DNA of 64,000 nucleotides from Basidiobolus meristosporus CBS 931.73 (taxonomy: Eukaryota; Fungi; Basidiobolomycota). The stretch lies in assembly GCA_002104905.1 (NCBI GenBank), contig MCFE01000503.1:1-64000 (forward strand), given 5' to 3'. Numbering within the stretch: the stretch's first letter is position 1; every line of letters starts with the position of its first letter. The notes under the pieces are model-generated. The model did not search any database and was not told the DNA's origin. It was given only the letters and a program-made list of their open reading frames with translations. This document shows, piece after piece, positions 27,816 through 60,772 of this stretch. The position numbers and the translations under genes were made by a program.

Positions 27816-27869
27816 TTGACAGATGCTCCACCACAGGCTATGTATTTCTTTATGCTGGTGCAGCTATTA

Positions 27870-28625
27870 CTTGAAATTGCAAGAAACAACTAACTGTGGC
27901 CCTATCTAAAACTGAAGCAGAATATATGGCTGCATGTCAAGCAACCAAGGAGGTTGTATGGCTACTAAAGTTATTCAAAGACTTAGGTTTTAATTCAGAA
28001 GAAGCAACATATATTTACAAGGATAATCAAAGCTGTATTTCATTAGCTAGAAATCCAACTAATCATGCCAGAACTAATCACATTGATATACAGCATCACT
28101 TTGTGAGGGAAGCTGTAGTAAATAACTTAGTAGTGTTAGTGTACTGCCTAACTAACAAAATGGTGGCAGATATATTGAGAAATCCTCTAGCTAGGCCACA
28201 ATATGAGAATCTCAGGTAGGAATTAGGATTAAGAAATTATTTAGTTGAGGGGGAGTGTTCAAGTATTGGACTATTTGGTATCATTCTGCAGCTAAAAACT
28301 TACTTGGCAATTCTGGACTATTCTTGGTCACTATGGGACTAGTTTACAGCTCTAACTTTGCCACTTTCTTCAGATCTATGATCATATGATTATTCCCCTA
28401 TAGTCAGGATCAAGTTAGCACTAATACTAACTATTATGTACTAACCCAGAAACGGTTACAGAATGCTCCTGAATATTGAGAAACCCTCCTTACTTAGTGT
28501 TACATCTGTATTACTTCTACAAAAGTATAAATACTGAGCTTCTTTATTAGTAAACAACAGTTCAACTATTATCACTATTTCTTGATAAGTCCCTTATATG
28601 CAAATCACTTCTTAAATTGCAACAA
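27870..28625 (+). mobile_element. 3' end of a second copia family: RNase H, PPT and LTR-E (~28256-28625)
   Basis: ALSKTEAEY...YKDNQSCI...HARTNHIDIQHHFVRE...ADIL (ORF 27896-28219). PPT TTGAGGGGGAG then TGTT. TATAAATA at ~28526. Probable end TTGCAACA at 28625. Confidence 0.75.
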
Positions 28626-39115: not shown

Positions 39116-39237
39116 AACATTTAAAACTTGGCCAATTATACTTGGTAAGAAAGTCCTGTACCCTACCAGATTTTCCTGACCCAAACATAACTAATCCCAC
39201 TTATGGTTTATTTTATCTCTTCTCAGAATCTATTATT

Positions 39238-42200
39238 TGTGGTAAGATTTTGTAATTATACCTAAATATTCACCTAACTTTGACACTTAGCTCATTACCT
39301 TCAAATCCTGGGGAATACTAGCTAAGTTCCATGTTGGGATTTACTTAGAATACTTTCATCAAAATATCAGGTACCCAGAACATGAAAATTCTCAAGGTTA
39401 TCCAAACAGCCCCAAACTTTGCACACAAGCTCTTGGGCCCTTACGTAGCCTAATCTACATGTTTGTAATGCCCAGATCATGTAAAAGTATAAATTTTACT
39501 TTTACATTCAATAAATCAATTAAGTGAGAAGCACATAATCTACTTGTCCTTCCAAATGACTTCAAATATCTCCAAGACTCATACTGCAGGCTATAAGCCC
39601 CAAGCTGTCACTCTCAGCAATGTCTACTACTGCTATTACTGGAACTTTTCCCTCTGCTGCAAAGTTGGATGGGTCTAACTACCAAGTGTGGAAGGTGAAG
39701 ATTAAGATGCTGCTACAAGAAAGAGGCCTTTGGGATATTGTCATGGGAAGAGAATGCCCTCCTAGAAATGTGGGAGAGGAAGCCTCAAAGCACCAGAAGA
39801 ATGAGCAAAGTGCCTTTAACTGCATTTGCCTTAATGTAAGCAATAAATTGCTAAATCAATGCTCAAATGCAAAAATGGCAAACAATGCCTGGAGGGCATT
39901 GGCAGAGACCTACCAGTCATGTTCAGCTACTAAGAAAATGTATCTTAAACAAAAAAATTACTACAAAGGTGCTGCCAGGAGACAAATGAAAAATTCAAGT
40001 AACAAAATTACCCTGCTGGTGGATGAGATGGAATCTGTGGGCATGCCAACTATTTGTGAGGAAGTGGAAGTAACCATCCTGAGTAGTCTGACAGACAGGT
40101 TTCAGGGCCTTGTGTCAGACCTAGAGTCCAGAACTGAAGATGTGACCTTAAATACATATATGGAAGGTTCCTGGATGAAGAATTTAATGATCAAGCACCT
40201 ATAAGAAGGAACAAGAAAGTGCTTTAATAAGCAGTGATAACCAACAAAGGAGGTATCCAATACCTTACAAAGGCAACAGCAACCTGTTTTGCAACTACTG
40301 CAAAAGGAAAGCACACACATTAGACCGGTGCTTCAAAAAGAGTGATTGTCAGCAGAAATGCTTGAATATGATTTGCTGCAACAACTGAAGATAAACTATT
40401 CATACCTGCACTAAATATGACCACAAACAAGGATTCTCAGATATGGTATATTGATTCTGGAGCATCTCAACACTTCATGCACCAAAAAGAACTCTTTACC
40501 CAATACCCAGAGATTCCAATTATGAAGGTTTTCATGGGTGAAAGTAGAATACTTGATGCAGTGGGAGAGGGAACTATCCAAGTAAACCTTAGAAGCAGTG
40601 AAGGAAGCAATACACAGACCTTCAAAGAAGTACTCTATGTACCAGAAATAGCCAAGAACCTACTATCTGTAAGTAAAGCCATAGCAGAAGGACTCAGTTT
40701 CAGCTTTGACATTTCTGGATGCAAGATCACTAATCAAAATGGTACCCATATTGCTTTGGGTATCAAAGATCAGAATCTACACAAGTTGACTTATATTCCA
40801 TCATATCTGGAAGCCAATATATGCAACTTAAATGAAGAAACCCCAGTGCTTTGGCACCAGAGATTTGGGCACATCAATTTTGATTATTTGCACAAAATTA
40901 TCAAAGATCAGCTAATTTTGGGAGTAAAAGTGGATCCCCCAGCTGATATGGAGCACTTTGAAGCCTGCATATATGGGGTACAAGCCATACAACTGCTCAA
41001 GAGCTCTGGGTTAATCAGAACTATGACAAAATTAGATCTAATTCACTCAGAACTATGTGGACCTATGCAAAATTTATCCTTAGGTTGGATGAAGTATATA
41101 TTCACTTTTATTGATGATTATACTAGATACACATGGGTCTACTTCATGGCGAGAAAGAAAGAAGCTCTGCCTAAGCTCAGGGAGCTTAAAACCATCTTGG
41201 TGAGAGAAACTGGTGAAAAATCAAGAAAATATGCCTTGACACTGGTGGCAAATATACCTCTAAACTCTTCATCCACTTCTGCAAAATTCATGAGATAAAG
41301 CAAGAGACAACTATGCAATACTCCCCACAGCAAAACAGAGTAGCAGAACGTACAAACAGATTAATAATTGATATGGCAAGTTCCATGATCCATAGTCAAA
41401 AATTATCCTATGCTTTTTGAGCAAAATCAGTTGCCAGAGCTGTATACCTTAAAAACAGGAGTTATAACAGAATACTTTGTGATTATACTCCATTTGAAGC
41501 ATGGTATGAATACAGATTAAGTGCAGAATATCTAAGAATACTTGGGTGTACTGTTTATCCTAAGGAACTGCCTAGAAATCAGCAAATATTTGAGCCCATA
41601 AGTGTAAAATGCATATTGTTGGGCTACTGCAATGAGAATAAAGTATATAGACTACACAATACCAAAGCAAAGAAGCTAATCAAGTTCAGAGATGTTTGAT
41701 TGAAGAAAATTCAAAACTTTTACAAAAATGACATCAGATGATGACAAAAATCTGATCTCAAGTCCACCAACTGTTAGAATTGAATCAGAGCATAACAGTA
41801 AAAGTCTTTTCACTCCAGAGGACTCTACAACCATGGTTTAACCTGAATCAGTGTCCAAAAATATCCCAGAAGTGATCATTCCAGTATCAAATGCCTGGAG
41901 ATCCAGCTGGACAAGAAATGGCCCAATTTATTATATCAATGAGGGTACAAACTTAACCTATGCCTATTCAGTACATATTGATGAATCCCAGACTGTAAAA
42001 GAGGCCCTAAATAGCCCCCAGGCAAGGTTTTGGAGATCTGCAATGACTGAGGAACATCAGGCTCTGGTGGAAAATCAAACTTGGGGCTTAGTTAAATTAC
42101 CAATCAACTGAAAATCAATTGGATGCAGATGAGTCTTTAAAACCTAGTATATGGCTGATGGTATAAATGAAAGATACAAAGCAAGACTTGTGGCCAAAGG

Positions 42201-43971
42201 ATACTCTCAGATAAAAGGACTTTAATATACTGAGACCTTTGCACTGGTAGCCAAGTTTAACTACATTAGATTGATATTGGCTATTTCAGCCAAATATAAG
42301 ATTTTTATTCATCATATGGATGTAAGAACAGCAATTTTGAATGAAGAACTTGATGAGAATGTGTATATGGACCAACCTGATGTGTTTGTTGACCAACATA
42401 ACCCCCATTTGGTCTGTAGGTGTGAAAAACCTCTTTATAATCTCAGACTATCACCAAGAGCCTGGAACTGCAAGATAGATTCTTTTTGGAATCTTTGAGC
42501 TTCAAAAGGAGTAATGCTGACTCTGGTATATACTATAAGCCAGAGTGGGCAAATCCAGCTCAATTAGCTCTATATGTGGACAATGCTATTATAGCTACCA
42601 ATAACCTAGCAACATTGGAAGTGACTAAATCCAGCCTATCTAAGGTGTTCTAGATGTGTGATCTAGGAGAACTTGGTTACTACTTAGGGATTAAGTTCTC
42701 CATAGACAGAAGTGCCTAGACTATTACCCTAAGCCAATCCAAGTATATTCAAGATATACTAAAGAAGTACCAAATAGAAGACTGTAAACCAGCATCTACC
42801 TTAATGGAGACAAACCTTAACTTGGTGAAAACTCAACCAAATCAAGAGAGCTTGGTGCCATCTGAAAACCCTGACTTTCCTCATCAATCTATGGTTGACA
42901 GTCTGATGTATATTATGCTTGGAACACGTCCAAATATTGCATATTTGGTGGGAGTTGTCAGCCAACATAATCAGAACTATGGAGCCAATCATATTGCAGC
43001 AGTTGAGCAGATTTTTAGATAACTAAAAGAAACTGCTGATAACTGCTTAAGATACACTTATAAAGATTCAGAACAGGATCTTGTGGGATACTGTGATGCT
43101 GCTTGGGGACAAAATTTGGAAGTCAGAAGATCCACCACAGGATACACCTCATTTTACTGTAAAGGAGCAATTTTGTGGAATTCAAGAAAGCCACCACAGG
43201 ATACACCTCACTTTACTGTAAAGGAGCAATTTTGTGGAATTCAAGAGAGCAACCAACCATAGCACTTTCTACCACAGAGGCAAAGTGTATGGCAGCATTT
43301 GAAGCTACAAAAGAAGCAATGTGGCTAAGAAAGCTTTTTACAGAGTTAGGCCTATGTCAAAAACACCTATTGCGTTATTTCAAGATAATCAAGGACAAAT
43401 ACAATTAGGTAAAAATCCAACTTTACATGCTAGAACCAAGCACATAGATATTAGACATCATTTCATATGTGAAGCTATAGAGAAATACTCAGTTAGCTTA
43501 TGTTACTGTCCTTCAGATGAAATAATAGCAGACATATTTACAAAACCATTAGCTAAAGACAAGCTTGAATATCTTAGGTCAAAATTAGGACTAGTCAGTA
43601 TGAACATTTAGCTGAGTGGGAGTGTTGTAAAAATTTGTATTTCCACCTAAATATTCACTTAACTTAGTCACTTAGATCATTACCTTCAAATCCTAGAAAA
43701 TACTGACCAAATTCCTTGTCGGGATTTACTTAGAATATTTTCACCAAAATACCAGGTACCCAGGACATGAAAATTCTCAAAGTTGTCCAAACAGCCCCAA
43801 ACTTTGCACACATGTTCTTGGGACCTTCCTTAACCTATTCTACGTGTTTGGTATGCCAAGACCAGGTAAAAGTATAAATACTACTTTTACATTCAATAAA
43901 TCATTAAGTGAAAACCTCATAATCTACTTGTTCTCCCAATCACTTCCAATATCTCCAAGACTCTTACAACA
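39238..43971 (+). mobile_element. Full-length copia-A copy A3 (decayed, no TSD)
   Basis: 5' LTR 39238-39588 (diverged), degenerate PBS GGCTATAAGCCCC, gag-PR-IN-RT-RH remnants, PPT GAGTGGGAG, 3' LTR 43623-43971. Flanks TTATT/ATACT do not match. Confidence 0.9.
43132..43249 (+). repeat. 59-bp direct tandem duplication at the RT/RNase H junction of A3
   Basis: CCACCACAGGATACACCTCA...TTCAAGA(A/G)AG twice, with 2 mismatches. Confidence 0.9.
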
Positions 43972-45168
43972 ATACTGAATATAGGATATACTACAAGCCA
44001 TAAAATGCAAGTCTAGCTCTATTGACTCAATATGTGGATGATCTTAATATAGCCACTAATAACTAATATACCTGGAAGAGACTAAATCTGATCTGTCCAA
44101 GGAGTTCAAGATGTCTAATCTAGGAGAACTCAGTGACTACTTAGGAATAAAGCTTGCCATGGATAGAAGTACAAAGACTATCACTCTAAACAAGTCCAAG
44201 TATGCTCAAGATATACTTATGTAGTACTAAATGAAAGACAGATAACTGGCAGCTACCCCAATCAAGACAAATCTTGACTTGGTCAAAGCTGCTGATAGGT
44301 TCTTAAGGTACATCAGTGAGAACTCAGAGCTGGATCTTGTAGGATACTCTGATTCTGACTGGGGACAAAGTTTAGAAAACAGAAGATCCACCACAGAATA
44401 CACCCTTTTGTTACTGTAATTGAGCAATTTCATGAAATCAAGAAATCAACTAATTGTAGCACTTTCCACCACAGAGGCAGGGTATGTGCTAGCCTGTGAA
44501 GCTACAAATGAAGCAATATGCTTAAGATAGCTTCTCAAAGACTTAAGCTTGTGTCAAAAAGTGCTTATTATTTTATTTCAAGATAATCAAGGATTTGTAC
44601 AATTAGGCAGAATTCAGGCTTTTCATGCTAGAAGTAAGCACATGGCTCTCTGACATCATTTCATATGTGAAGCTATGGAGAGCAACTAAGTTACTTAGCT
44701 TACTGCCCAGCAGATGCAATGATTGCAGACATATTTACCAAACCATTAGCTAGAGACAAATATCAATATCTTAGGTCACAATTAGGACTAGTCAGTATGA
44801 TCATTTAGTTGGGTAGGAGTGTTGCAAAGATTTATAGTCCCACCTAAACACTCACCCAACTTAGTCACTTAGATCATTGCCTACAAATCCTAGTGAATAC
44901 TGACCAAATTTCATTTTGGGATTTGCTAGGAATATTTTCACCAAATCACCAGGTACCCAAAACATAAAAATTCTCAAGGTTGTTCAAACTGCCACAAACC
45001 TTTCACGCATGCTTTTAGGACCTTCCTAGACATGTTCTACATGCCTGTGATGCCAGGACTATGTAAAAATATGACTACTACTTTCACATTTAATATACCT
45101 TTAAGTGAAAACCCCATAATAAGCTTATTCTACCAATCACTTCTAGTATGTCAGAAATCCTTACAACA
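43972..45168 (+). mobile_element. Older copia-A 3' fragment (RT-RNase H, PPT, 3' LTR 44820-45168)
   Basis: Homologous to the A RT/RH region with deletions. LTR TGTTGCAA...TTACAACA, 349 bp. Confidence 0.8.
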
Positions 45169-48100
45169 TTTACCAGTATGTTGTTGTAAAAGTTTGTAAT
45201 TACACCTAGATATTCACCTAACTTAGTCACTCAGATCCTTACCCTCAAATCCTAGAGAATACTAACCAAACTCCTTGTTGGGATTTACTTGGAATATTTT
45301 CACAAAAATACCAGGTACCCAGAACATGAAAATTCTCAAAGTTGCCCAAACAGCCCCAAACTTAGCACACATGTTCTTGGGACCTTCCTTAGTCTATTCT
45401 GCATGTTTGTAATGTAAAGACTATGTAAAAGCATAAATACTACTTCTACATTCAATAAATCATTAAGTGAAAACCACATAATCTACTTGTCCTCCTAATC
45501 ACTACCAATATCTCCAAGACTCTTACAACAGGTTATGAGCCCCAAGCTGTCACTTTCTGGAATGTCTACTACTGCTATTACTGGAATTTTCCCTCTACTG
45601 AAAAGTTGGATGGATCTAACTACCAAGTGTGGAAGGTGATGATGAAGATGCTGCTACAAGAAAGAGGCCTTTGAGATATTGTCATGGGAAAAGAATGCCC
45701 TCCTAGAAATGTGGGAGAGGAAGCCTCAGAGTACCAGAAGAAAGAACAAAGAGCCTTTAACTGCATTTGCCATAATGTCAAAGGCAAATTGCTAATTCAA
45801 TGCTCAAGAGCAAAAATGGCAAAGAATCCCTGGAAGGCATTAGAAGACACCTACCAGTTATGTTCAGCTGCTAAGAAAATGTATCTGAGGCAAAAATTCT
45901 TTACTACAAAGATTCTGCCAGGAGAAGAAATGAAAAATCTAATCAACAGAATTAACCTGCTGGTAGATGAAATGGAATCTGTGGGTGTACTAACTACTGA
46001 TGAGGATGTGATGGTTACCATCCTGAATAGCCTGAAAGACAGGTTTCAGGGCCTTGTATCAGCCCTAGAGTCCAGAACTGAAGAATTGACCTTAAGTTGC
46101 ATATATGGAAGGCTCCTGGATGAAGAATTGAAAAAATCAAGTGCCAATAAGAAGGAAGAAGAAAATGCTTTAATAAGCAATGATAACCAACAAAGGAGGT
46201 ACCTAATACCTTACAAAGGCAACAGCAACCTGTTTTGCAACTACTGCAAAAGGAAAGGACACACATCAGACCAGTGTCTCAAAAAGAGTGATAATTAGCA
46301 AAAAAAGCCTGAATATGGAAATGCTGCAACAACTGATGATAGACTATTCAAATCTGCACTAAATATGACCACAATCAAGGACTCTTAGATATGGTATATT
46401 GACTGTGGAGCATCTCAACACTTTTCACATCAAAAAGAACTTTTTGCACAATATCAAGAAATTCCAATCAAGAAGGTTTTCATGGGTGACAATAGAGCAC
46501 TTGATGCAGTGGGAGAAGGAACTATCCAAGTAAACCTAAGAAGCAGTGAAGGAAGCCACACACAGACCTTCAAAGAAGTACTTTATGTACCAGAAATAGC
46601 CAAAACCCACTATCTGTAAGCAAGGCTACAACAGAAGGACTCAGTTTCAGCTTTGACAATTCTGGATGCAAGATCACTGATCAAAATGGTGCCCATATTG
46701 CTTTGGGTATTAGAGATCAGAATCTATACAAGTTGACTTATGTTCCATCATATCTGGAAGCCAATATAAGTAACTTGAATGAAGAAACACCAATGCTTTG
46801 GCATAGGAGATTTGGACACATCAATTTTGATTATTTGCGCAATATGATTAAAGATCAGCAAATATCTGGAGTGAAAGTTGATCCCCCAGCTAATTTGGAG
46901 CCCTGTGAAGCCTGCATATATGGGAAACAAGCCAGACAACTGTTCAAGAGCTCTGGGTTAATCAAAACTAAGAGAAAATTAGATCTAATTCACTCAGATC
47001 TGTGTGGACCTATGCAATAAGTATCCCTAGGTAGGATGAAGTATCTAATCACTTTTATTGATGATTAAACAAGATACACATTAGTCTACTTCATGGCAAG
47101 AAAGGGAGAAGCTCTGTCTAAGCTCAGGGAGTTTAAAGCCATGGTGGAGAGAGGAACTGGTGAGAAAATGAAAAAAATATGCTCTGACAATGGTGGAGAA
47201 TATACCTCAAAACTCTTCATCCACTTCTGCAAAATTCATGGGATAAAGCAAGAGACTACTGTACCACACTCCCCACAGAAAAATGGAGTAGCAGAACGTG
47301 CTAACAGATCAATAACTGATATGGCAAGTTCAATGATCCATGATCAAAAATCAACCTATGATTTTTGGGAAAAATCAGTTGCCACTGCTGTATATCTTAA
47401 AAATAGGAGTTATAGCAGAATACTATGTGATTTGACTTCATTCAGAGCATAGTATGGGTACAGACCAAGTGCAGAACATCTAAGAATATTTGGGTGTACA
47501 GCATATGCCAAGAAACTGCCCTGAAATCAGTCAAAATTTGAGCAAAATAGTGTAAAATGCATATTTTTGGGTTACTGCAATGAGAGTAAAGCAGACAGAC
47601 TCTACAATACCAAAACAAAGAAGCCAATCAAGTCTAGGGATGGGCTGTTTGATGAAGATTCAAAATTTTCACAAAAAATGACATCAGATGATGACAAAAA
47701 TATGATCTCAAGTCCACCAATAGTTGGGATTTAATCAGAGCAAAACAATGATGGGTTCTTCACTCCAGAGGACTCTACAACCATGGTTCAGCCAGAATCA
47801 GTGCCCAGGATTATCCCAGAAGTGATCACTCTGGTATCAAATGCCTGGAGATCAAATTGGACAAGAAATAGCCCAAATTACTATATCAATGAGGGTACAA
47901 CTTAGCCTATACCTATTCAGTCCATATTAATGAGCCCCAGACTGTAAAAGAGGCCCTAAATAGCCCTCAGCCAAAGTTATGGAGATCTGCAATCACTGAG
48001 GAACATCAGGCTCTGATGGAAAATCAAACTTGGGACTTAGTCAAATTACCAATCAGCCAAAAATCAATTGGATGCAGATGGGTCTTCAAGACAAAATACA

Positions 48101-49461
48101 AGTCTGATGGTACAATTGAAAGATACAAAGCAAGACCTGTAGCCAAAGGGTACTCTCAAACAAAAGGACTTGACTATACTGAGACCTTTGCACCGGTAGC
48201 CAAGTTTGATTCCATCATATTAATATTGGCAATTGCAGCTAAATATAAGTTTTTTACTCATCAAATGGATGTAAAAACTGCATTTTTGAATGAAGAACTT
48301 GATCAGGATGTGAATATGGACCAGCCTGATAGGCTGGCTGACTAAGATAACCCCCATATGGTCTGCAAGCTTAAAAAGTCACTATATGGTCTCCAACAAT
48401 CACTGAGAGCCTAGAGTTGCAAGATAGATTCTTATTTGGAATCTTTGAGTTTCAAAAGGAGTAATGCTGACTATAGTATATACTATAAGCCAGAGAGAGC
48501 AAGCCCAGCTATATTAGCTCTATATGTGGATGATCTTGTTATAGCCACCAATAACCTAGAAACATTGGAAGAGACTAGATCCAGCCTGTCTAAGGAGTTC
48601 AAGATGTCCAATCTAGGAGAACTCAGTTACTACTTAGGGATTAGGTTCTCCATAGACAGAAGTGCCCAGACTATTACCCTAAGCCAATCCAAGTATATTC
48701 AAGATATACTAAAGAAATACCAATTGGAAGACTGTAAACTGGAAGCTACCCCAATGGAAACAAACCTTTACTTGGTCAAAACTCAACCAAATCAAGAGAG
48801 ATTGGTGCTATCTGAAAGCCCTGACTTTCCTTATTACTCTATGGTCAGCAGTCTGATGTATATCAAGCTTAGGACATGTCCGGATATCTTATATTCAGTG
48901 GGAGTTGTTAGCCAATTTAATCAGAATGATGGATCTGATCATATTGCAGCAGTTAAGCGGATTTTTAGATACCTAAAGGGAACTGCTGATATCTGCTTAA
49001 GATACACTTATAAGGATTCAGTACAGCATCTTGTGGGATACTCTGATGCTGATTGGGGACAAAATTTAGAAGACAGAAGATCCACCACAGATACACCTTT
49101 CTTTACTGTTAAGGAGCAATTTCATGGAATTCAAGAAAGCAACTAACCATAGCACTTTCTACCATAGAGGCAGAGTATATGGCAGCCTTTGAAGCTACAA
49201 AAGCAGCAATATGCTTAAGAAAGCTTTTTACAGATTTAGGCCTATGTCAAAAAATGCCTGTTACTTTATTTCAACATAATCAAGGATGTATACAACTAGG
49301 TAGAAATCCAACTATTCATGCTAGAACTAAGCACATAGATATTAGACATCTTTACATACATGAAGCTATAGAGAATAACTTAGTTAGCTTAGTTTACTGT
49401 CCTACTGATGAAAAGATTGCAGACATATTTACCAAACCATTAGCTAGAGGCAAGTTTGAAT

Positions 49462-52400
49462 TATTGTAAGAGTCTTGGAGATATTGGAAGCGATTGGGAG
49501 AACAAGTAGATTATGTGGTTTTCACTTTATGATTTATTGAATGTACAAGTAGTATTTATACTTTTACATGGTCTTGGCATTAAAAACACATAGAGTAGGC
49601 TAAGGAAAGTCCCAAGAACATGTGTGCAAAGTTTGAGGCTGTTTGGACAACTTTGAGAATTTTCATGTTCAGGGTACCTGGAATTTTGGTGAAAATAATA
49701 TAAGTAAATCCCAACAAGGAATTTGGTCAGTATTCTCTAGGATTTGAAGGTAATGATCTAAGTGACTAAGTTAGGTGAATATTTAGGTGGAAATACAAAT
49801 TTTTACAACACTCCCACTCAGCTAAATGTTCATACTAACTAGACCTAATTTTGACCTAAGATATTCAAACTTGTCTCTAGCCAATGGTTTAGTAAACATG
49901 TCTGTAATCATTTCATCTGTAGGACAGTAAACTAAGCTAACTAAGTTATTCTCTATAGCTTCACGTATGAAATGATGTCTAATATCTATGTGCTTGGTTT
50001 TAGCATGAAAAGTTGGATTTCTACCTAATTGTATACATCCTTGATTATGTTGAAATAAAGTAATAGGCATTTTTTGACATAGGCCTAAGTCTGTAAAAGG
50101 TTTTCTTAACCACATTGCTTCTTTTGTAGCTTCACAGGCTGCCATATACTCTGCCTCTGTGGTAGAAAGTGCTACGGTTGGTTGCTTTCTTGAATTCCAT
50201 GAAATTGCTCCTTAATAGTAAAGAAAGGTGTATCTGTGGTGGATCTTCTGTCTTCTAAATTTTGTCCCCAATCAGCATCAGAGTATCCCACAAGATGCTG
50301 TACTGAATCCTTATAAGTGTATCTTAAGCAGATATCAGCAGTTCCTTTTAGGTATCTAAAAATCCGCTTAACTGCTGTAATATGATCAGATCCATCATTC
50401 TGATTAAATTGGCTGACAACTTCCACTGAATATGAGATATCTGGACATGTCCTAAGCTTGATATACATCAGACTGCCAACCATAGATTGATTAGGAAAGT
50501 CAGGGCTTTCAGATGGCACTAAGCTCTCTTGATTTGGTTGAGTTTTGACCAAGTAAAGGTTTGTTTCCATTGGGGTAGCTGCTGGTTTACAGTCTTCCAT
50601 TTGATACTTCTTTAGTATATCTTCAATATACTTTAATCGGCTTAGGGTGATAGTCTGGGTACTTCTGTCTATGGAGAACTTAATCCCTAAGTAGTAATTA
50701 AGTTTCCCTAGATTGGACATCTTGAACTCCTTAGATAGGCTGGATTTAGTCTCTTCCAATGTTTCTAGGTTATTGGCAGCTATAATAAGTTCATCCACAT
50801 ATAGAGCTAATAGAACTGGACTTGCTCTACCTGGCTTATAGTATATATTATAGTCAGCATTACTCCTTTTGAAACTCAAAGATTCCAAATAAGAATCTAT
50901 CTTGCAATTCCAGGCTCTTGGTGATTGATTGAGACCATATAGTGACTTTTTAAGCTTGCAGACCAAATGGGGGTTATCTTGGTCAACAAACCCATCAGGC
51001 TGGTCCATATACATGTCCTCATCAAGTTCTCCATTCAAAAATGCAGCTTTTACATCCATTTGATGAGTAAAAAACTTATATTTGGCTGCAATAGCCAATA
51101 TTAATCTGATGGAATTAAACTTCGCTACCAGTACAAAGGTCTCAATATAGTCAAGTCCTTTTGTTTGAGAGTACCCTTTGGCTACAAGTCCTGCTTTGTA
51201 TCTTTCAATTGTACCATCAGACTTGTATTTTGTCTTGAAGACCCATCTGCATCCAATTGATTTTTGGCTGATTGGTAATTTGACTAAGTCCCAAGTTTGA
51301 TTTTCCATCAGGGCCTGATATTCCTCAGTCATTGCAGATCTCCATAACTTTGGCTGAGGGCTATTTAGGGCCTCTTTTACAGTCTGGCGCTCATTAATAT
51401 GGATTGAATAGGCATAGGCTAAGTTTGTACCCTCATTGATATGGTAATTTGGGCTATTTCTTGTCCAATTTGATCTCCAGGCATTTGATACCAGAGTGAT
51501 CACTTCTGGGATATTCCTGGGCACTGATTCTGGCTGAACCATGGTTGTAGAGTCCTCTGGAGTGAAGAACCTATCATTGTTTTGCTCTGATTCAATCCTG
51601 ACAATTGGTGGACTTGAGATCAAATTTATGTCGTCATTTGATGTCATTTTTTGTGAAAATTTTGAATTTTCATCAAACAAGACATCCCTGGACTTGATCA
51701 GCCTCTTTGCTTTGGTATTGTAGAGTTGGTATGCCTTACTCTCATTGCAGTAGCCCAAAAATATGCATTTTACACTTTTTGGCTCAAATTTTGACTGATT
51801 TCCGGCCAGGTTTTTTGGCATATGCTGTACACCCAAATATTCTTAGATGTTCTGCACTTGGTCTGTATCCATACCATGCTTCAAATGGAGTAGAATCACA
51901 AAGTATTCTGTTATAACTCCTAGTTTTAAGGTATACAGCAGTGGCAACTGATTCCGCCCAAAAATCATAGGATGATTTTTGATCATGGATCATAGATCTT
52001 GCCATATCAATTATTGATCTGTTAGCATGTTCTGCTACTCCATTTTGCTGTGGGGAGTGTGGTACAGTAGTATCTTGTATTATCCCATGAATTTTGCAGA
52101 AGTGGATGAAGATTTTTGAGGTATATTCTCCACCATTGTCAGAGCGTATTTTCTTGATTTTTTCACCAGTTTCTCTCTCCATCATGGCTTTAAACTCCCT
52201 GAACTTAGACAGAGCTTCTTTCTTTCTCTCCATGAAGTAGACCCATGTGTATCTTGTATAATAATCATTAAAAGTGATTAAATACTTCATCCCACCTAAG
52301 GATAAATTTTGCATAGGTCCACACAGATTTGAGTGAATTAGATCTAATTTTCTCTTAGTTTTGATTAACCCCAAGCTCTTGAACGGTTGTCTGGCTTGTT

Positions 52401-53957
52401 TCCCGTATATGCAGGCTTCACAGTGCTCCAAATTAGCTTGGGGATCAATTTTCACTCCAGAAATTAGCTGATCTTTGATCATTTTACACAAATAATCAAA
52501 ATTGATGTGTCCAAATCTCCTGTGCCAAATTATTGGTGTTTCTGCATTTAAGTTACTTATATTGGCTTCCAGATATGATGGAATATTAGTCAACTTGTAT
52601 AGATTCTGATCTCTGATGCCCAAAGCAATATGGGCACCATTTTGATCAGTGATCCTGCATCCAGAATTGTCAAAACTGAAACTGAGTCCTTCTGCTGTGG
52701 CCTTGCTTATAGAGAGTAGGTTCTTGGCTATTTCTGGTACATATAGTACTTCTTTAAAGGTCTGTGTATGGCTTCCTTCACTGCTTCTTAGGCTTACTTG
52801 GATAGCTCCTTCTCCCACTGCATCACGTGTTCTATCATCACCTGTGAAAATCTTCTTAATTGGAATTTCTTGATAGTGGGTCAAAAGTTCTTTTTGGTGT
52901 GTAAAGTGTTGAGATGCTCCAGAGTCAATATACCATGTCTGAGAATCCTTGTTTGTAGTTGTATTTAGTGCAGATATGAATAGTCTATCATCAGTTATTG
53001 CAGCACTTCCATATTCAGGCTTCTTTTGCTGATTATCTTCTTTTTGAGACACCGGTCTGATGTGTGTCCATTCCTTTTGCAGTAGTTACAAAACAGATTG
53101 CTGTTGCCTTTGTAAGGTCTTGGGTACCTCCTTTGTTGGTTATCATTGCTTATTAAAGCATTTTCTTCTTCCTTCTTATTGGCACTTGATTTTTTTAATT
53201 CTTCATCCAGGAGCCTTCAATATACTTAATTCAAGGTCAATTCTTCAGTTCTGGACTCTAGGGCTGATACAAGGCCCTGAAACTTGTCTGTCAGGCTATT
53301 CAGGATGGTAACTATCACATCCTCATCAGTAGTTGGTATGCCCACAGATTCCATCTCATCTACCAGCAGGGTAATTCTGTTGATTAGATTTTTCATTTCT
53401 TCTCCTGGCAGCATCTTTGTAGTAAAGAATTTTCTTCTCAGATACATTTTCTTAGCAGCTGATCATGACTGGTAGGTGTCTGCTAATGCCTTCCAGGCAT
53501 TTGCTGCCGTTTTTGCTCTTTAGCATTGAATTAGCAATTTGTCCTTAACATTAAGGCAAATGCAGTTAAAGGCACTTTGTTCTTTCTTCTGGTACTTTAA
53601 GGCTTCCTCTCCCATGTTCTTAGGAGGGCATTCTTCTCTAATGACAATATCCCAAAGGCCTCTTTCTTGTAGAAGCATCTTCATCTTCACCTTCCACACT
53701 TGGTAGTTAAATCCATCCAACTTTTCAGCAGAGGGAAAAATTCTAGTAATAGCAGTAGTAGACATTGCAGAGAGTGACAGCTTGGGGCTCATAACCTGTT
53801 GTAAGAGTCTTAGAGATATTGGAAGTGACTGGGAGGACAAGTAGATTATGTGGTTTTCACTTAATGATTTATTGAATGTAGAAGTAGTATTTATACTTTT
53901 ACATGGTCTTGGCATTATAAACATGTAGAATTGGTTAGGAAGGTCCCAAGAACATGT
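49462..53957 (-). mobile_element. Copia-A copy A5, inserted antisense into the RNase H tail of A4
   Basis: 3' LTR 49462-49810, PPT, long ORFs 50172-51836 and 51784-53052, PBS 53784-53796. 5' LTR truncated to 53797-53957. Left target TGAAT. Confidence 0.9.
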
Positions 53958-54061
53958 AAAAGTATAAATACTACTTCTACATTCAATAAATCATTAAGTG
54001 AAAACCACATAATCTACTTGTCCTCCCAGTCACTTCCAATATCTCCAAGACTCTTACAACA
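53797..54061. repeat. Quasi-palindrome: 109-bp arms (53797-53905, 53953-54061), 47-bp spacer
   Basis: Arms are reverse complements with one mismatch found by eye. The junction carries a CATGT microhomology. Confidence 0.9.
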
Positions 54062-54199
54062 TATGTAACATATCCACAACAGAAAACTTGCAGATTAAAT
54101 CTAAGAAAAGAGCTTTGGAGAGATACTATCATACTTGAGGGCTATGTACTTGGTGACCAGCTTAATAAAGAATCTAGTATTGCTACAAACTTTGCAACA

Positions 54200-54470
54200 C
54201 TTTTAACTGCCAAAGACATCACAGATTGTGCAACTTCTCACCAACTTTTATCAGTTGAGTCACATGTCTTGCTTTTATCATAGAGCCAAGCACATTGCCA
54301 CAAATTACCATTTTTTTAGAGTGGATATAGAGTATAAACAGGTTGGCCTTGCTTGTTGCCATATTTTTGAAGTGATGGCAGATTTGCCTATAAAACACTA
54401 TCAAAGTCCATTTGAATATCCTGAACCACTAATGGGATCAGTTAATACAAATAGAGTCAAATAGAAGTGC
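54200..54470 (+). pseudogene. Highly decayed copia RNase H remnant
   Basis: FYHRAKHIATNYHFFR...MADLPIK resembles the FHARTKHIDIRHHF...ADIFTK motif. Confidence 0.5.
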
Positions 54471-54560
54471 TCTAAGGATTGAGCTTGAGCTGAGAAACTG
54501 CCACTAACTGAGACACTTCAGACATAGCTACTGACATTTATTAATTTTAACCCATGTTCT

Positions 54561-54830
54561 TGTTGTAAGAGTTTTGGACATATTGGAAGTGATTGGGAGG
54601 ACAAGTAGATTATGTGGTTTTCACTTAATGATTTATTGAATGTACAAGTAGTATTTATACTTTTACATGGTCTTGGCATAGCAAACATGTAGAATAGGTT
54701 AAGGAAGGTCCCAAGAACATGTGTGCAAAGTTTGGGGCTGTTTGGACAACTTATCTAATTTCATGTTCTGGGTAAGTAATCTAAGTAAATCCCAACAGGG
54801 AATTTGGCAAGAGTTCCTCAAGACTTGTAG
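54561..54830 (-). repeat. Truncated copia-A LTR, the last clear TE piece before the gene island
   Basis: TGTTGTAAGAG start, follows the LTR consensus with an internal deletion, end missing. Confidence 0.85.
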
Positions 54831-55636
54831 ACAAAAGATACAACAGTCACTTACACTCAATAAATTAAAAAAGTGAAAACCACATAATCTACTCATGCTT
54901 TGATTCACCGAGTCTCTATCGATCATGAAGTAAAGCTGCATATTCCACTTGTTCCACAAACCACTTCTATTAATTCCAAAATTCACATAGCAGGAATATT
55001 GTCATAACACCACCAGATGAATTTCGTAGGGCTGGGGCTTATATATATTCCGTATGGTATTCTGCCGTAACAATCCATATCCACCTGCAAGACCAAACTA
55101 TCTTTCCTAGGGCAATTGGCAAGTTATTGGCAACAATCCGGTGTCCTGCATATTTTACATGGGTAGCAAACAACGTTTACACGCATGAGCAACAACATGA
55201 TTCCATGAACTGGAGGAGCTGAGCATGCACTTTCCCTGTTGGACCTCTAACGGAATCTCCCCCCCCCAATCCACCATGACGTCGCAAGAAAACCGGTAGA
55301 AATTACACGCACTGGATCTTTGGTGGTGGATGCAAATGTCACCAAAACAAATCACATCTGTGGAAATATTCGAAGTTCAGTTCAACTGCATTGCTTTCTC
55401 CTGCTTTCCCAGTCGAAAAATAAAGCTGCGTAACAAAGAAATCGTGTAAAGTCCGCAGCATACTGATTGATCCGATTTCAACAACTACCCAATGCCAGTC
55501 ACGTTAAATACTCCAACGTTTATTGAGAACAACGAAGGCAAAACTAATGGAGCATAATGATATGACGATGAAGCTATCTCGCTACCGAGTAAGGGTCTAG
55601 GTGGTACCTAGTTGGTGGGATGTTTGAGGGGATGAG

Positions 55637-58545
55637 TTAAGGCTGGGCTGGGGAGATGCTTTCGTAGCTCCACAAGCGAGCACGACAATCTCCGGATGCG
55701 GTAGCGAACAGGCCACCCACCGGACTCAAATTGATGGAGATCACTGGTGATCGAAGGGCTGATTAGTGATGCGTCTTACTGTTGGGCGAATGAACCGGTT
55801 GGTTACCTGAATTTTTGTGTCCCTGAAGCATGAACTGAGTGTGTGCGGTGTTCGGATCCCAGAATTGAACCCCGCGATCCTTGGACCCGGATACTATCCA
55901 GTTCCCGCATGGGGAGCATGCCACGGACAAAACGAAGTCCTAACAAAGATCCATTTTCGGTTCAGCAACTCCTCGGCCCATTGGTCAAAAGCCGGGGACA
56001 TACCTTGTGTCCAACGAAAGTGGTCCTGCATGGGTTGGGCTTCTGTCCCATGTTGTTGGCATTCTTACTGCTGAGGATATCCCAGAGTTTGATCGTCTTG
56101 TCCAGAGATCCGGAGATGAGGGACTTGCCTAGAGATGGACATGAGATTGCCGCTCGTCAACAACACACAACACTTCCGTGGGACCAACCGTCTGGTGTGA
56201 ACGCGATAGAATAGACGCTATCCTTGTGGCCCTCGAGTTTCTCCAAGAGCTGTCCGGTCTGAACATCCCACACTCTGACCATCTTATCCAACGATCCTGC
56301 GGCCACTAGACGCCCATCTGGGCTGAACGCAACTGAAGTGACTCCGGCTTCCTTGGGGCCGTTCTCTTCGATCATAAGAGTATATACACACTTGCCGCTA
56401 TCCATGTCCCAGATCCTAGCGGTCCTATCCCCAGATCCCGACACGACCAGACGGCCGTCTCGAGAGAAATCGAGGGAGTAGATGTCCTGCTCGTGGCCTT
56501 GGAAAAGATTGCGGATCCTTCTCCTGGCGATGTCCCAGATCTGAAAGTGTCAAGGTCAAGGTCAGTACGAGCGCTCGTTGTCGATGTATAGGGGACTCCA
56601 CCCACCCGGATCTGCTTGTCCTCAGCCCCGGTGGCCAGGAACTTTCCGTCGGGACTAAAGCAAACCGCTCTGATGTAAAGGTCCCCATCTCTGTTGGCCG
56701 CCTCGTCCTGCAAAACACTGGAAGGACACGTGAGTCACGGGAAATCGCTCGGACGGAAAACTCCAAAGTTACCAAATCTTGCTTCCGTTCTGGACGTCGT
56801 AGATCTGTGCACTTCTGTTACACCCGGTGGCCAGATACTTGCCATCGTTGCTAAAGCGGACGCAGCAGACGACACTAAAGATGCGTGAGCCATGAGAAGG
56901 TAAGGCTTTGAACTCGCGCCGGAGCGATCCGAACTGTACCTGCTATGGTCCAACGTGTGAGCTAGATCGACATTCAGCTGGCGGGGAACTCGGGGGTTGA
57001 AGCTGTGGAGAGGCAACTTTAGGTCGCTGGCGATCTCTGGGCAATCCTAAAGGTGACTTACATGGCAAACCAATCCGACCCTTCACGCTTGAGTCCAGAT
57101 GGGAGATTCTCGAGATCTACGTCGTTGAAGCTGCCATTAGCAGAGCCAGGGCCCTTGGCGGAGGGGGCCCGAACAGGTCCGGCGACAGCAGACTGCTGGG
57201 GTGGGAGACCGCCGTTGCTTGGCTTGCGATTCATGCCTTGGGGACTAGCGCCGGAGTAGGGGGGCCCGTTCTGAGGAGGTCCTTGCTGAGAGTCCGGCTG
57301 CACACCCATCGGTGGTTGAGAAGTAAGCGGCCCTTGGTGTCCCATCTAGTATAAAGAATGAAGGTTAGTCGGCGAATATGATTGCTGAGAATTCCCGTAA
57401 CACCCACCGGATGATTTTGCGGACTACCTTGCATATAACCTACGTATGTGGTAGAAAACACGCAAACGTGTGAGTTTTATTATATATAATATATTAACGA
57501 TTATATAAGCTACCCATCGGAGGCTGGCCGGGTCCTTGTCCCATCATCCCAGGCAACTGGTTGGGCGGTTGGCCTGGCACCGGAGGTGAGGATGTTGGGA
57601 CAGAGCCGTACATGGACGGCTGTTGCATCGGAGGCTGTGACTGTCCAGCCATATGATGCGGAGGAGCATCCGAGTCCCCTCGCAGCCTTTTGTTGGGCGG
57701 CTGGTGGCCACCTTGTGGTGGTGGGCCTTGTTGTGGTGTGCCGGGAGGGCCACCGCTGGAGTAAGCGGATAGCCCTGGAGGACCAGATCCCGGACCTGGA
57801 TATCCTGGATGTTGTGGTTGTGGCTGTTGATTTGGATCCATCATCTGAGGTGGTGCCGCTAGAGAATTGGGACCGTTTTGTGCACCGCTCATGATTCCGC
57901 TAAATAGGTTGGATGGGCCATGGCCGATGTTGGGAGGTGCCGGTTTGTGAGTTTGATGTGGTGTACCGCCGCTTTGAGGGTGGGAACCGCGTGCCTCCAG
58001 CTCGCGACGAAGCCTCAATATCTCCTCTTCGTATCTGGAAACATGGAGAAGTGTAAGTATACCAGCGTAGAGTGGACATAGAACGTAGCATAGAGGTGGG
58101 CAAGCTCTTACTGTTGTTTTATCTTCTGGTGGGTTCTCTCAAGTTCATACAGATTCTGCTGGAAGCCGGTCATCTCGTTTAGCTGTGCAGAAACTAAAAG
58201 GGGTATGAACGTTAGTCGTTCATCTCAAGAATTGACATTCGACGAAGTTGGGTGGCGAGCCCAGAGCCATGGGGAAACAGGGAGGCTTTCAAGCGAGGGA
58301 ACGCTCCACGTGACCTGATAATTCAGTACCAGGATATCGCGTAGTTTAGATGGAACCACCTGTCGACCTGTCCGGCACATAAAAGAAAACTTACTCTTGT
58401 GCTCAAACTCGTCACGTTGCATCTTAAACATGGACACATCTTGATTGACCTGTTCAAACTCGACTTTCAAAGCATCTAGAAGTTCGGGAATTCTACTGCC
58501 GGCCCCGGCAGGAACCATGGGACGATGATTATAGATGTTTGACAT
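55637..58545 (-). CDS. TUP1: General transcriptional corepressor Tup1 (Tup_N coiled coil, P/Q/G-rich linker, WD40 repeats), 12 exons, 687 aa
   Basis: Exons: 58395-58545, 58112-58193, 57514-58034, 57408-57439, 57062-57345, 56940-57002, 56773-56874, 56606-56717, 56189-56540, 56004-56128, 55807-55939, 55637-55743. All introns GT-AG with consistent phases; total 2,064 nt. Motifs: [88 protein letters not shown]. Confidence 0.93.
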
Positions 58546-59033
58546 CTCCGCGACTACTTGCGTAAACTGACTGTCAAATGGGGATGACTCTTGTACTTCG
58601 AAACGCAAATTTGGTTGGGTCGAAGTTGGAAAAAAATAGACGGCCGAGTTTTTCTTTCAAAGATGGGATATCACAGAGATTAAGCAAGCGAGAGGAATCT
58701 TGTGTAGATATATGATCATTCCTTTTAATGAGTGAATTTTCAACCGCCATAGGTTATTAAGGGGGAAAGATCAAGAACCCTCCTCACTTCGCTTGGTATA
58801 TTTTTGGTTTACGCTTTTTATCATATAACCTTGGCCCTTACGAGATTGTCCACAAATTTTCACCGGGATTCCCCATATTTGGAAATCGGGAAAATAATAT
58901 CGGTTGTGGTTTCGGTTGTGGTTTCATTTTGGATTGTACTAGCCCTTCATCAAATATTCTCAGTAAAATAACCACCTGATGCTGGAGTTGTGCGTTGTGC
59001 GTTGTGGGAAATCGATGGTTGCTTAATGGTAGC

Positions 59034-59105
59034 GGCTCAATGGTCTAGTAGTATGATTCCTCGTTCGGGTCGAGGAGGTCCCGGGTTCAATTCCCGGTTG
59101 AGCCC
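59034..59105 (+). tRNA. tRNA-Pro(CGG), 72 nt, no intron
   Basis: Acceptor stem GGCTCAA/TTGAGCC, anticodon stem CCTCG/CGAGG with loop TT-CGG-GT, T-arm CCGGG-TTCAATT-CCCGG. Closely follows the eukaryotic tRNA-Pro pattern. Confidence 0.92.
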
Positions 59106-59115
59106 GAAGATTGAA

Positions 59116-59120
59116 TTTTT
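59116..59120 (+). terminator. Pol III terminator (T5)
   Basis: TTTTT 10 nt after the tRNA 3' end. Confidence 0.6.
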
Positions 59121-59296
59121 GCATCTGCCCGGTGTTAAGGAGCAGGCCTTGCGTCAATCTGAAGACAATGAAAGGGCAAAGCAAAAGACGAGGCAGTGAT
59201 GTATAGGAGGGAGGATGGAAACAGTTCTCCGAGCATGTTTAATGTGAAATTATGTATACATAAGTAGTGTAATTCTGACGATCCAAAAGTTTCCAG

Positions 59297-59847
59297 TTAT
59301 GCGGTGGGCTTGGTTTTCTTGACCTTCTTTCTCTCCTTCTTCTTCAAGGCGTCCATCTGCACCTTCATGATGTTGCCATACGAATCGAGGAATTTCTCGT
59401 AATCGGCCGGTTGTACCTAGAATCAACATACCCAGCTAAATAGTTGAACAGTCGGGGATTCGTGGGGGGAATACTTAAGTACCAGGGTACTGATCTTGGC
59501 ATTTCCACAGCTGGCTCGGACCAGAGTGGAGTATTCGGTCTCGTCGGTCACTTCGACTGTACTTCCCTTCTTTTTGACGTCGTGATCAACTACGAAAACA
59601 GAGCCAGCAATCAATCAACTTAGTGGACGACAAAGATTCCCACGTAAGTAAAAAGGCCTACATCTTTTCATGTTCAAGTACACGGTTCCTGAGGTTTTGG
59701 ACTTTTCAAAGAAACGGGTGACTTGTGTGAGAAACTAGAAAAAGATTAGCACGAGAAAGGAACAAAGTGTGCTCAAAATCCGGAGAGAACTGCAACAACA
59801 AAGGGATGAATGAATAGTGTATATACCGAATCGTTGTCGACAAGCAT
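59297..59847 (-). CDS. SRP14: Signal recognition particle 14-kDa subunit, 4 exons, 106 aa
   Basis: Exons 59827-59847, 59662-59734, 59483-59589, 59297-59416 (321 nt, GT-AG). Protein MLVDNDSFLTQVTRFFEKSKTSGTVYLNMKRF...LVRASCGNAKISTLVQPADYEKFLDSY...MDALKKKERKK is typical of Srp14. Confidence 0.88.
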
Positions 59848-60772
59848 CTTTTTGTGTGGGTCGGTCTCTAATTCTGCTCGAAGCTAGGTAGAAATGAAAT
59901 AATTCCAACGAGAGCAACCTTATCGTGGTGCATCGCCATCAGCTTTTTGTGGCATGAACCTTGATTAACCGGGATAAATACGGATTTAACTTGATTGATT
60001 TTGGACACTTTGAATAGTCTAATCAGCATGGCTATTCAGGTTACATGGATTAGTCGACCTCCTTCAGAACACTCACGGCACATCCACATAACCCAATTGG
60101 TTGTCGTTGATAACAAACACAGAGGTGCTTTGTTTTGATGGACACTTGCCGTATTACTATTTTAATCAACAACACTAAGCATCTATCGAGTCTGGTTAGT
60201 GGCTTCCCAAGCATGAATGTTGTGGATGATTACGACATCATCTAGATACCCCAAATATTCAGGGGACTCGAAGGATAGTAAGTACGTCAATGCTATGGCC
60301 GGTGGAAATCCCCAGGATCAACGATTGTTATTTTACGTAATAAAAACAAGATTGCTACGATGACGGATTTTGAGCGATATTTTTGATGAGCCATGAGCTT
60401 GATATTTACTCCTGGTGATAAAGGTCGAATCAGGGCCGCCCACGCTGATATAAAATTTCTTGGATAGATTTCACCCGCTGGGTCAGATTTGTTTAAACTA
60501 CTCCAAGTGCATATTACGTTGGCTCGAAAGATTATTTCCCCTGCCAACCTTAACAATTTTCGTTAGTAGCCGTGGCGAGCCTGAACGTCACATTTCATTC
60601 TCCAACCTCACCTAGACTACTTTCGAGTTTGACTTAGAAATCAAGGTATTTTATCTTCTTCCCGTTAATCTAGTTGTTGCGTGCTGGCCAGGGCGCTGGT
60701 ATATAAGTAAGTGTCTGGAAACAAACTAATCTTCTTCATCCATCGTTCCTAGTGAATTTTCCTTGTGACAAA

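Follow-up and report, generated by a model that had tools for sequence, protein, structure and literature searches.

A near-palindrome of two nested copia elements in Basidiobolus meristosporus and its candidacy as a hairpin-RNA silencer

The genome of Basidiobolus meristosporus CBS 931.73 carries, on contig MCFE01000503.1, an 8.9-kb near-palindrome consisting of two dead copies of one copia family (A4 and A5) which lie head-to-head. The locus raises the question of whether it acts as a natural hairpin-RNA silencer of its own family, as proposed in the original prediction, or whether it is a by-product of ordinary transposon nesting. It was analysed within the window, that is, the whole stretch of 64,000 nt from which it was taken.

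Structure of the nested pair

The two arms of the palindrome (45369-49461 and 49863-53957) are approximately 92% complementary and enclose a loop of 401 nt between their inner ends at 49461 and 49863. In a BLAST search against the window, the left half, belonging to A4 (positions 188-4280), matched 53957-49863 with 92.2% identity over 4,097 nt, while a repeat search of the window found the collinear inverted blocks I1, I2, I3, I6, I8 and I11 to span the arms. The arms differ from one another by 312 substitutions and several indels, and share 52 perfect runs of at least 21 nt, amounting to 1,926 nt in total. A loop of about 0.4 kb and arms of about 4 kb had been anticipated by the original prediction; both exist, but the outer arm ends which it gave (45420 and 53905) were misplaced. 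Its TATGT duplications bounding the unit were read directly on both sides as identical 5-mers (45177-45181 and 54062-54066), a match with a chance probability of about 1/1024, and they represent the TSDs of A4.

The 5′ LTR of A4 (45182-45530, plus strand), identified by LTR alignment and motif scan, is 349 nt in length with the ends TGTTG...CAACA, these ends having been set independently by an alignment of 12 LTRs. Directly adjoining it is the PBS GGTTATGAGCCC (45531-45542, plus strand), which, as in copia and Ty5, we take to pair with the anticodon stem-loop of initiator tRNA-Met. The internal region of A4 (45531-49461, plus strand) comprises gag, protease, integrase and RT, and is broken into at least seven ORF pieces.

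A5 is nested in A4 in antisense orientation, at the extreme 3′ end of pol, in agreement with its predicted position near the 3′ end of A4. Since it inserted almost at that end, the arms span nearly the whole element. The complete 3′ LTR of A5 (49462-49810, minus strand, LTR alignment), with its terminal CA mutated (the plus strand reads TATTG), makes up most of the loop. The remainder is the A5 3′ tail (49811-49862, minus strand) with the final pol codons and the polypurine tract, and the corresponding 52 nt are absent from A4. Here, an ORF (49822-50145) stops 11 nt short of the 3′ LTR and the purine-rich GAGTGGGAG directly precedes it. The internal region of A5 (49863-53796, minus strand), antisense to A4, is in at least six ORF pieces and is followed by a 5′ LTR remnant (53797-53957, minus strand) running from LTR position 349 to 188, the upstream 187 nt of U3 being gone. 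Of the 3′ LTR of A4, LTR positions ~241-349 remain (53953-54061, plus strand; block I17 and LTR alignment). The predicted deletion between the A5 5′ LTR and the A4 3′ LTR is upheld by these kept LTR positions and by the 5-nt CATGT microhomology which the remnants share at the junction (53953-53957, read directly), within a quasi-palindromic CCAAGA[A/C]CATGT motif.

The elements have the features of Ty1/copia, namely direct TG...CA LTRs with a 5-bp TSD, a PBS adjoining the 5′ LTR and a polypurine tract adjoining the 3′ LTR, and a copia-type domain order along A5 in which integrase precedes RT. The Pfam domains of A5 are DUF4219, Retrotran_gag_2, Pol_BBD, gag_pre-integrs, rve, SH3_retrovirus and RVT_2 (1.6e-76). 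The family is very abundant, with 67,618 unitigs from a single run matching 5.4 kb at ≥95% identity, and further nests occur in the window, A1 lying inside the LTR of A0 and A3 inside an older relative, Ax. As the family is both abundant and self-nesting, inverted pairs are to be expected as by-products.

Age, decay and exchange between the arms

Identity is 92.4% between A4 and A5, 92.1% between A5 and A1 and 90.6% between A4 and A1. The pair forming the palindrome is no closer than other pairs, and therefore A4 and A5 are independent insertions and not a duplication. Private changes number 137 in A4 against 89 in A5, an excess which would be expected for the older, host element. In the LTR alignment, the LTRs of one element differ at 14/161 positions in A5, 28/347 in A1 and 8/116 in A4; with an LTR-LTR divergence of 7-9%, both A4 and A5 are old. 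All five copies of the family in the window are broken, with 6-10 ORF pieces each.

The decay of the locus follows that of its surroundings. CpG observed/expected (o/e) values stand at 0.035 (A4 arm), 0.105 (A5 arm) and 0.094 (loop), while that of the whole TE block (55 kb) is 0.06 versus 0.785 for the gene block. There are 36 alignment columns with both TG and CA, whereas the GpC control has 9. In their substitution spectra A4 and A5 resemble A1 and A2, and the CpG and substitution decay of the A4/A5 unit matches that of the unpaired copies A1-A3.

Three patches have been homogenised between the arms, two in the long arms and one being the short LTR palindrome. These segments are closer than the age of the copies predicts and have private states in common. 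The first tract (47727-48176, partner 51148-51598) has 12 mismatches where 34 are expected, a deficit reached in 0/2000 permutations (P < 0.0005), and its shared derived states are found only in the A4 and A5 pair. The second (48891-49140, partner 50184-50433) has 5 mismatches against 19 expected (permutation P = 0.0115), with 8-9 shared derived states per 200 nt. In the short palindrome, the A4 3′ LTR remnant differs from the complementary A5 5′ LTR remnant at 1/109 positions; the arms of this palindrome differ at 2/116, compared with 7-8/116 in other comparisons, and share a private G in addition to a C seen elsewhere only in the A4 5′ LTR. A4 and A5 have 39 derived states in common, against 4-22 for other pairs. 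Among the permutation controls, three of five pairs gave P > 0.1 and A4-A3 gave 0.08 at 250 nt; the pair A5-A3 was significant, but its minimum falls in the LTR. Such patchy similarity could in principle stem instead from recombinant source elements.

These patches also bear on whether the palindrome is an artefact in which an assembler misjoined two separate family copies head-to-head. The family is extremely repetitive, the stretch was found only in runs of one sample, probably the source of the assembly, and among independent DNA contigs (short Logan unitigs) none bridges 49461/49462 or 53953-53957. Against this, the unit is closed over its two junctions by the matching TATGT duplications, the inner junction has the clean form of an integration at an LTR end, and the arms, 92% alike with separate indels, are unlike adapter-skipping palindromes. 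The homogenised patches, with private states in common, require physical proximity in vivo and thus argue that the palindrome exists there. Given the 312 substitutions and indels between the arms, the TSD closure and the conversion tracts, a misjoin is extremely improbable.

The locus is likely to be what ordinary transposon nesting has left behind in a CpG-decayed, heterochromatic cluster of copia elements, a by-product which is presumably methylated and mostly silent. Its formation took the following course. A4 integrated first, duplicating the 5-bp TATGT, and A5 later, antisense, approximately 13 codons before the end of the A4 pol and 52 nt ahead of the A4 3′ LTR. The A5 5′ LTR then faced the A4 3′ LTR, the two forming a palindrome of 349 nt around a spacer of about 55 nt. 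The presumably unstable centre of this palindrome was then lost in a deletion of ~480 bp joined at the CATGT microhomology, which left the A5 LTR from position 188 onwards and the A4 LTR from ~241, without the spacer and the inner LTR parts. Decay in place of about 4% per copy, with the loss of nearly all CpG, followed, accompanied by patchy gene conversion of the two long-arm tracts and the whole short LTR palindrome.

Transcription signals and the silencer question

The original prediction envisaged that the locus acts in the manner of Mu killer, with a transcript from the A4 5′ LTR running through the loop to the AATAAA at 53985, folding into a ~4-kb hairpin that is diced without RdRP into siRNAs silencing family A in trans. 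A silencer of this type would be defined by transcription from a promoter spared from silencing, by siRNAs specific to the locus and by a dominant, heritable silencing of active family members in trans. The structure itself is suited to this, as it is a long inverted duplication of target-transposon sequence with arms 92% complementary over 4.1 kb, including the 52 perfect runs. In predicted folding, 1.3 kb of RNA around the loop forms a single long stem (-833 kcal/mol). An RNA crossing the 401-nt loop would accordingly fold into a long duplex, a Dicer substrate, and at the time of its formation, when its arms would have matched almost perfectly, the hairpin could have triggered silencing of the family. 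In Naumovozyma castellii, 74% of the siRNA reads that map to siRNA-producing loci come from palindromic ones (PMC7528652), and entomophthoralean relatives are reported to possess core RNAi genes (PMC10515909).

The signals for such a transcript are less favourable. In the A4 5′ LTR the TATA box is mutated to CATAAATA (45432, plus strand), as had been noted in the original prediction, and the LTR at 44820, suggested there as an alternative promoter, is in worse condition, neither its TATA (now ATATGACTA) nor its AATAAA (now AATATA) being preserved. The AATAAA of the A4 5′ LTR (45454, plus strand) would probably be skipped, since in these LTRs it follows the TATA box by 15 nt and so should lie ahead of the start site. 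Read-in from the intact 3′ LTR of A3, by contrast, would meet it. A motif scan found no plus-strand AATAAA in the loop. The A4 3′ LTR remnant does carry TATAAATA (53963) and the AATAAA at 53985, but the latter is not the only one on the strand of A4, as had been thought. Downstream of the A4 promoter there is another at 50054-50059 (plus strand, motif scan), 192 nt inside the antisense arm, in addition to eight ATTAAA, and it could end a plus-strand transcript approximately 200 nt into the second arm. The locus also lies deep in the block with a CpG o/e of 0.06, with no gene promoter feeding it from the left flank, while Mu killer needs transcription that escapes transposon silencing (PMC3440606). 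The unpaired copies show the same decay, and the family reached a very high copy number regardless. The locus was found in no RNA run. A silencer of this kind is very unlikely here.

A second route would start in the loop. The A5 3′ LTR has an intact TATAAATA (49553) and AATAAA (49533), both on the minus strand and facing the A4 arm, and any transcript exiting it would enter A4 antisense at 49461. With its TATA intact and aimed into A4, antisense RNA of the family would be possible without an 8-kb read-through. Such RNAs would be short and antisense to the pol 3′ end, and might pair in trans with sense transcripts of other copies or recruit RdRP. In the revised model of Mu killer, too, the long hairpin gives way to short antisense transcripts (0.65-0.74 kb; PMC3440606). 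The A5 5′ LTR remnant similarly retains the predicted leftward TATAAATA (53888, motif scan) and an AATAAA (53868). However, a minus-strand AATAAA at 49265 would cap the read-out RNA of the 3′ LTR at about 250 nt, and this LTR is within the same CpG-depleted block as the rest of the unit. Leftward firing as a source of silencing RNA is therefore a highly doubtful proposition.

A broader form of the idea is that a copia family which seeks heterochromatin, by nesting in itself in antisense orientation, provides RdRP-independent hairpin or antisense seeds of RNAi and CpG methylation against all its copies, the locus being one such seed and perhaps partly active through the loop LTR. This is improbable but, if true, a trigger of the Mu killer type would arise automatically from the self-insertion habit of a family in an early-diverging fungus. 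No feature of the sequence singles the locus out as a silencer that is dedicated to the family or at present acts on it. A hairpin-RNA role may be regarded as possible and unsupported, and most likely the locus would supply at most a minor share of the small RNAs of the family.

Comparison with known systems

As a relic of nesting, the locus is not surprising, and it is of use for annotation and as an entry in a list of candidates. It is also a well-resolved example of a nested insertion creating a long palindrome, of centre deletion in an LTR palindrome and of exchange between arms. The independence of A4 and A5 and the three homogenised patches between the arms are new here. Nested LTR retrotransposons were reportedly described in maize intergenic repeat clusters by SanMiguel et al. 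in 1996. A4/A5 is alike in that an element lies inside a like element, the composite is enclosed by the TSD of the host and the inserted copy is the younger of the two; it differs in that A5 is antisense and near the 3′ end, and in the deletion and arm conversion that followed.

Palindromes are said to undergo centre-break deletion in the mouse (Cunningham et al., in 2003) and reportedly have been studied in yeast (Lobachev et al., in 2002), while the palindromes of the human Y chromosome undergo arm-to-arm gene conversion. Similarly, in A4/A5 a closely spaced inverted repeat (349-nt LTR arms, ~55-nt spacer) seems to have lost its centre with a microhomology join, and its arms have been homogenised. 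It differs in that the mechanism is deduced from the end product, and in that conversion was patchy, the long arms being 92% identical.

If hairpin RNA and silencing of the family were true of this locus, it would rank among the rare natural killer loci that act on LTR retrotransposons and would be the first in a zoopagomycete fungus, tying self-nesting to self-silencing. The palindromic loci of Naumovozyma (Saccharomyces) castellii are likewise fungal inverted repeats, giving hairpin transcripts which feed Dicer (PMC7528652). Those loci have been shown to be transcribed and diced, whereas A4/A5 is a structural candidate in another fungal lineage with a CpG-decay (methylation-type) signature. 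Mu killer of maize resembles A4/A5 in being an inverted transposon duplication with kb-scale arms, which could in principle give a ~4-kb hairpin RNA homologous to its family (PMC3440606). However, it is a natural inverted derivative of MuDR, a DNA transposon, formed by rearrangement beside genes; it is transcribed, with both flanking-gene read-through and internal antisense transcripts, and its dominant silencing of MuDR is genetically proven. A4/A5, by comparison, is an LTR-retrotransposon nest in a CpG-decayed block with a mutated promoter.

Structure and formation of the A4/A5 palindrome

The unit at 45182-54061 comprises two copies of one retrotransposon family (family A), namely A4 on the plus strand and A5 lying antisense inside it. 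The order of Pfam domains along A5 (DUF4219/Retrotran_gag_2, Pol_BBD, gag_pre-integrs, rve, SH3_retrovirus, RVT_2) assigns it to the Ty1/copia class, and the encoded proteins are plainly copia Gag-Pol. A repeat scan of the window gave collinear inverted blocks (I1, I2, I3, I6, I8, and I11) with inner ends at 49461 and 49863 and 401 nt between them, and a BLAST of 45182-49461 against the window returned a single reverse match, pairing element positions 188-4280 with 53957-49863 at 92.2% identity over 4,097 nt. Alignment of the 12 LTR copies of the window gives an LTR length of 349 nt (TGTTG...CAACA) and places the start of the A4 5′ LTR at 45182 and the end of the right-hand LTR fragment at 54061. 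TATGT lies directly outside both ends (45177-45181 and 54062-54066); copia integrases produce 5-bp duplications. The inverted repeat and TATGT bounds of the original prediction were borne out by these three analyses, with small corrections. The primer-binding site GGTTATGAGCCC is found at 45531-45542 and, on the minus strand, at 53785-53796. We take it to pair with the anticodon stem-loop of initiator tRNA-Met and not with a tRNA 3′ end, which would mean priming by a half-tRNA, the mode of Drosophila copia and yeast Ty5.

The internal region of A4 has its last base at 49461 and is followed by the complete 3′ LTR of A5 (49462-49810), which is present as the reverse complement on the plus strand with a mutated terminal dinucleotide, by the last pol codons and polypurine tract of A5 (49811-49862, 52 nt), its ORF stopping 11 nt short of its LTR, and by the A5 interior, which extends from the loop edge to the primer-binding site boundary at 53796. 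This loop-side anatomy shows that A5 integrated antisense 52 nt upstream of the A4 3′ LTR, some 13 codons ahead of the pol stop.

At the right end, a remnant of the A5 5′ LTR (53797-53957, LTR positions 349 back to 188) meets a remnant of the A4 3′ LTR (53953-54061, LTR positions ~241 to 349), both overlapping in CATGT within a quasi-palindromic CCAAGA[A/C]CATGT motif. Approximately 480 bp are missing, these being 187 nt of the A5 LTR, the duplicated target, the 52-nt tail of A4 and ~240 nt of its LTR, and this piece is the centre of the former 349-nt LTR/LTR palindrome with its spacer of ~55 nt. As judged from the end product and from the established instability of palindromes, the centre may have been lost and the ends joined by microhomology. 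The junctions, LTR remnants and TATGT bounds thereby support the structural reading proposed originally, antisense nesting followed by deletion. The right flank (54062-54560) is unique in the window, which offers no empty-site paralogue for comparison.

Age of the two copies and probable sequence exchange between the arms

A4 and A5 are 92.4% identical, with 312 diagnostic substitutions between them, compared to 92.1% identity for A5 and A1 (another family A copy) and 90.6% for A4 and A1. Private substitutions number 137 in A4 and 89 in A5, which fits A4 as the older host copy. A one-step inverted duplication of a single element was rejected, as A4 and A5 are no closer to each other than A5 is to A1, their private changes differ in number and the loop holds an entire LTR whose integration junction is clean. 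The two LTRs of one element differ at 14/161 positions in A5, 28/347 in A1 and 8/116 in A4; this divergence is as large as that between copies, so nearly all arm differences accumulated in place, and a newly formed hairpin would have been close to perfect. All copies in the window are broken, with at least seven ORF pieces in A4 and at least six in A5, and a query of three ORFs of the unit for exact products found none on record.

A feature absent from the original prediction is that the arms appear to have exchanged sequence. The short palindrome 53797-53912/53946-54061 has 2/116 mismatches (1/109 in the truly homologous part), compared to 7-8/116 in other LTR comparisons, and in the LTR alignment its arms share one G absent from every other LTR and one C found elsewhere only in the A4 5′ LTR. 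Within the long arms, tract 47727-48176 (partner 51148-51598) shows 12 mismatches against an expected 34, a value reached by 0/2000 permutations, and tract 48891-49140 (partner 50184-50433) shows 5 against an expected 19 (P = 0.0115). Of five control pairs, A4-A1, A5-A1 and A1-A3 gave P > 0.1 and A4-A3 gave 0.08 at 250 nt; the pair A5-A3 was significant (P 0.004-0.011), but its minimum falls in the LTR. A4 and A5 exclusively share 39 derived states (other pairs, 4-22), and these cluster in exactly these tracts. Gene conversion between the arms is the simplest reading of this pattern. Such homogenisation, which would need the palindrome to be present in the organism, argues that the arrangement exists there and is not an assembly join of two copies.

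The surrounding nested cluster and its CpG decay

The unit sits in a 55-kb cluster of family A and older relatives, with A4 13 bp downstream of the older relative Ax (37626-45168), which has 73-81% identity to A4, is interrupted by the copy A3 (39238-43971, sense) and has lost both TATA and AATAAA from its 3′ LTR (44820-45168). The LTRs of A3 differ at 48/345 positions, far above those of A1, A4, and A5; A3 could thus be a recombinant or be put together from two elements. A1 (LTRs 1686-2032 and 6016-6364, minus strand) is nested in the same orientation in another family A LTR (1476-6503), split at about position 138 (6369-6503 corresponding to LTR 3-137 and 1476-1682 to LTR 140-349), and is a further case of self-nesting, here into an LTR. 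Remnants of more distantly related copia elements, with 69-75% identity to family A pol, occur as short stretches at 27818-28194 and 37320-37619. The transposon block has at its very edge, 500 bp to the right of the unit, the truncated family A LTR A6 (54561-54807, minus strand), which lacks 18 nt internally and is followed by an inverted LTR scrap of 42 nt (54852-54893).

The A4 arm has a CpG o/e ratio of 0.035 and the A5 arm one of 0.105. A sharp composition border at 54800-55000 separates the cluster (1-54800, CpG o/e 0.06, GC 39%) from the gene block (55000-64000, CpG o/e 0.785, GC 50%), with CpG loss restricted to repeats. Where one copy keeps a CG the others mostly have TG or CA, with both found in 36 columns compared to 9 in the GpC control; decay therefore continued after insertion, and the pattern is the mark left by CpG methylation or by a mutation process directed at CpG. 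CpG decay and substitution spectra are common to paired and unpaired copies. RIP-like hypermutation of paired copies was rejected, the transition/transversion ratio being ~2:1 and the A4 and A5 spectra matching those of the unpaired A1 and A2.

Family A is extremely abundant, with 5.4 kb matched at ≥95% identity by 67,618 unitigs from a single DNA run; these are ~85 nt long and show abundance, but they bridge no junction and bear on neither structure nor expression. At the private sites of A5 the majority letter of the unitigs differs from A5. Summed unitig depth over the family (48800-54200, runs X1 and X2) is ~10^6, compared to ~117 for the one exact 373-nt contig extending into the right flank (54036-54200); taking 117 as the single-copy depth would give thousands of copy-equivalents, as an order of magnitude only. 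With a family that nests in itself, about half of such nestings being expected antisense, the locus is unlikely to be unique.

Transcription signals and comparison with known silencing loci

An RNA transcribed across the loop would fold, 1.3 kb centred on the loop giving one continuous stem at -833 kcal/mol, and the arms have 52 perfect runs of at least 21 nt in common. The original prediction had a transcript entering from the A4 5′ LTR or the LTR at 44820 and crossing both arms. While the arms would indeed fold, the latter LTR lacks its signals, and the TATA of A4 reads CATAAATA. Nor is the AATAAA at 53985 the only one left on the A4 strand, as had been claimed, since the antisense arm has another 192 nt in, at 50054; the plus strand also has eight ATTAAA. 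The 3′ LTR of A3 is intact (TATAAATA at 43873), and its read-in transcript would meet the A4 LTR AATAAA at 45454. No gene promoter was found left of the unit in the window. A bacterial promoter and terminator scan, irrelevant for a eukaryote, was below shuffle expectation.

The nearest gene, the first past the CpG border, is Tup1-like (~55.8-58.6 kb, minus strand) and is aimed at the transposon block; its Tup_N domain (58225-58608, minus strand, 2.4e-09) suggests a Tup1/Groucho-type co-repressor. Read-through from it would first meet minus-strand AATAAA at 55519 and 54537 and the signals in the LTRs of A6 (54632) and A5 (53868). A further possible source of RNA, not considered originally, is the complete A5 3′ LTR in the loop, which keeps an intact TATA aimed into A4 (49553, minus strand) and could yield a short family-antisense RNA with no long read-through needed. 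The sequencing runs containing the stretch are DNA runs of one sample only, with no RNA run among them. The transcription logic of a hairpin silencer thus looks weaker than first held, and a dedicated, currently active silencer would, from its context, be quite improbable.

The maize Mu killer locus, the precedent named originally, owes its effect to being transcribed in spite of transposon silencing and is genetically proven (PMC3440606); the A4/A5 unit is a structural candidate. Palindromic loci are an established source of Dicer substrates in the fungus Naumovozyma castellii (PMC7528652), RNAi core genes have been reported in entomophthoralean relatives (PMC10515909), and inverted transposon insertions have been described as dsRNA sources in animals (PMC7084138). 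With such palindromic sources of dsRNA and siRNA in fungi and animals, this kind of locus is already known, and the A4/A5 unit would be a candidate member of it by structure.
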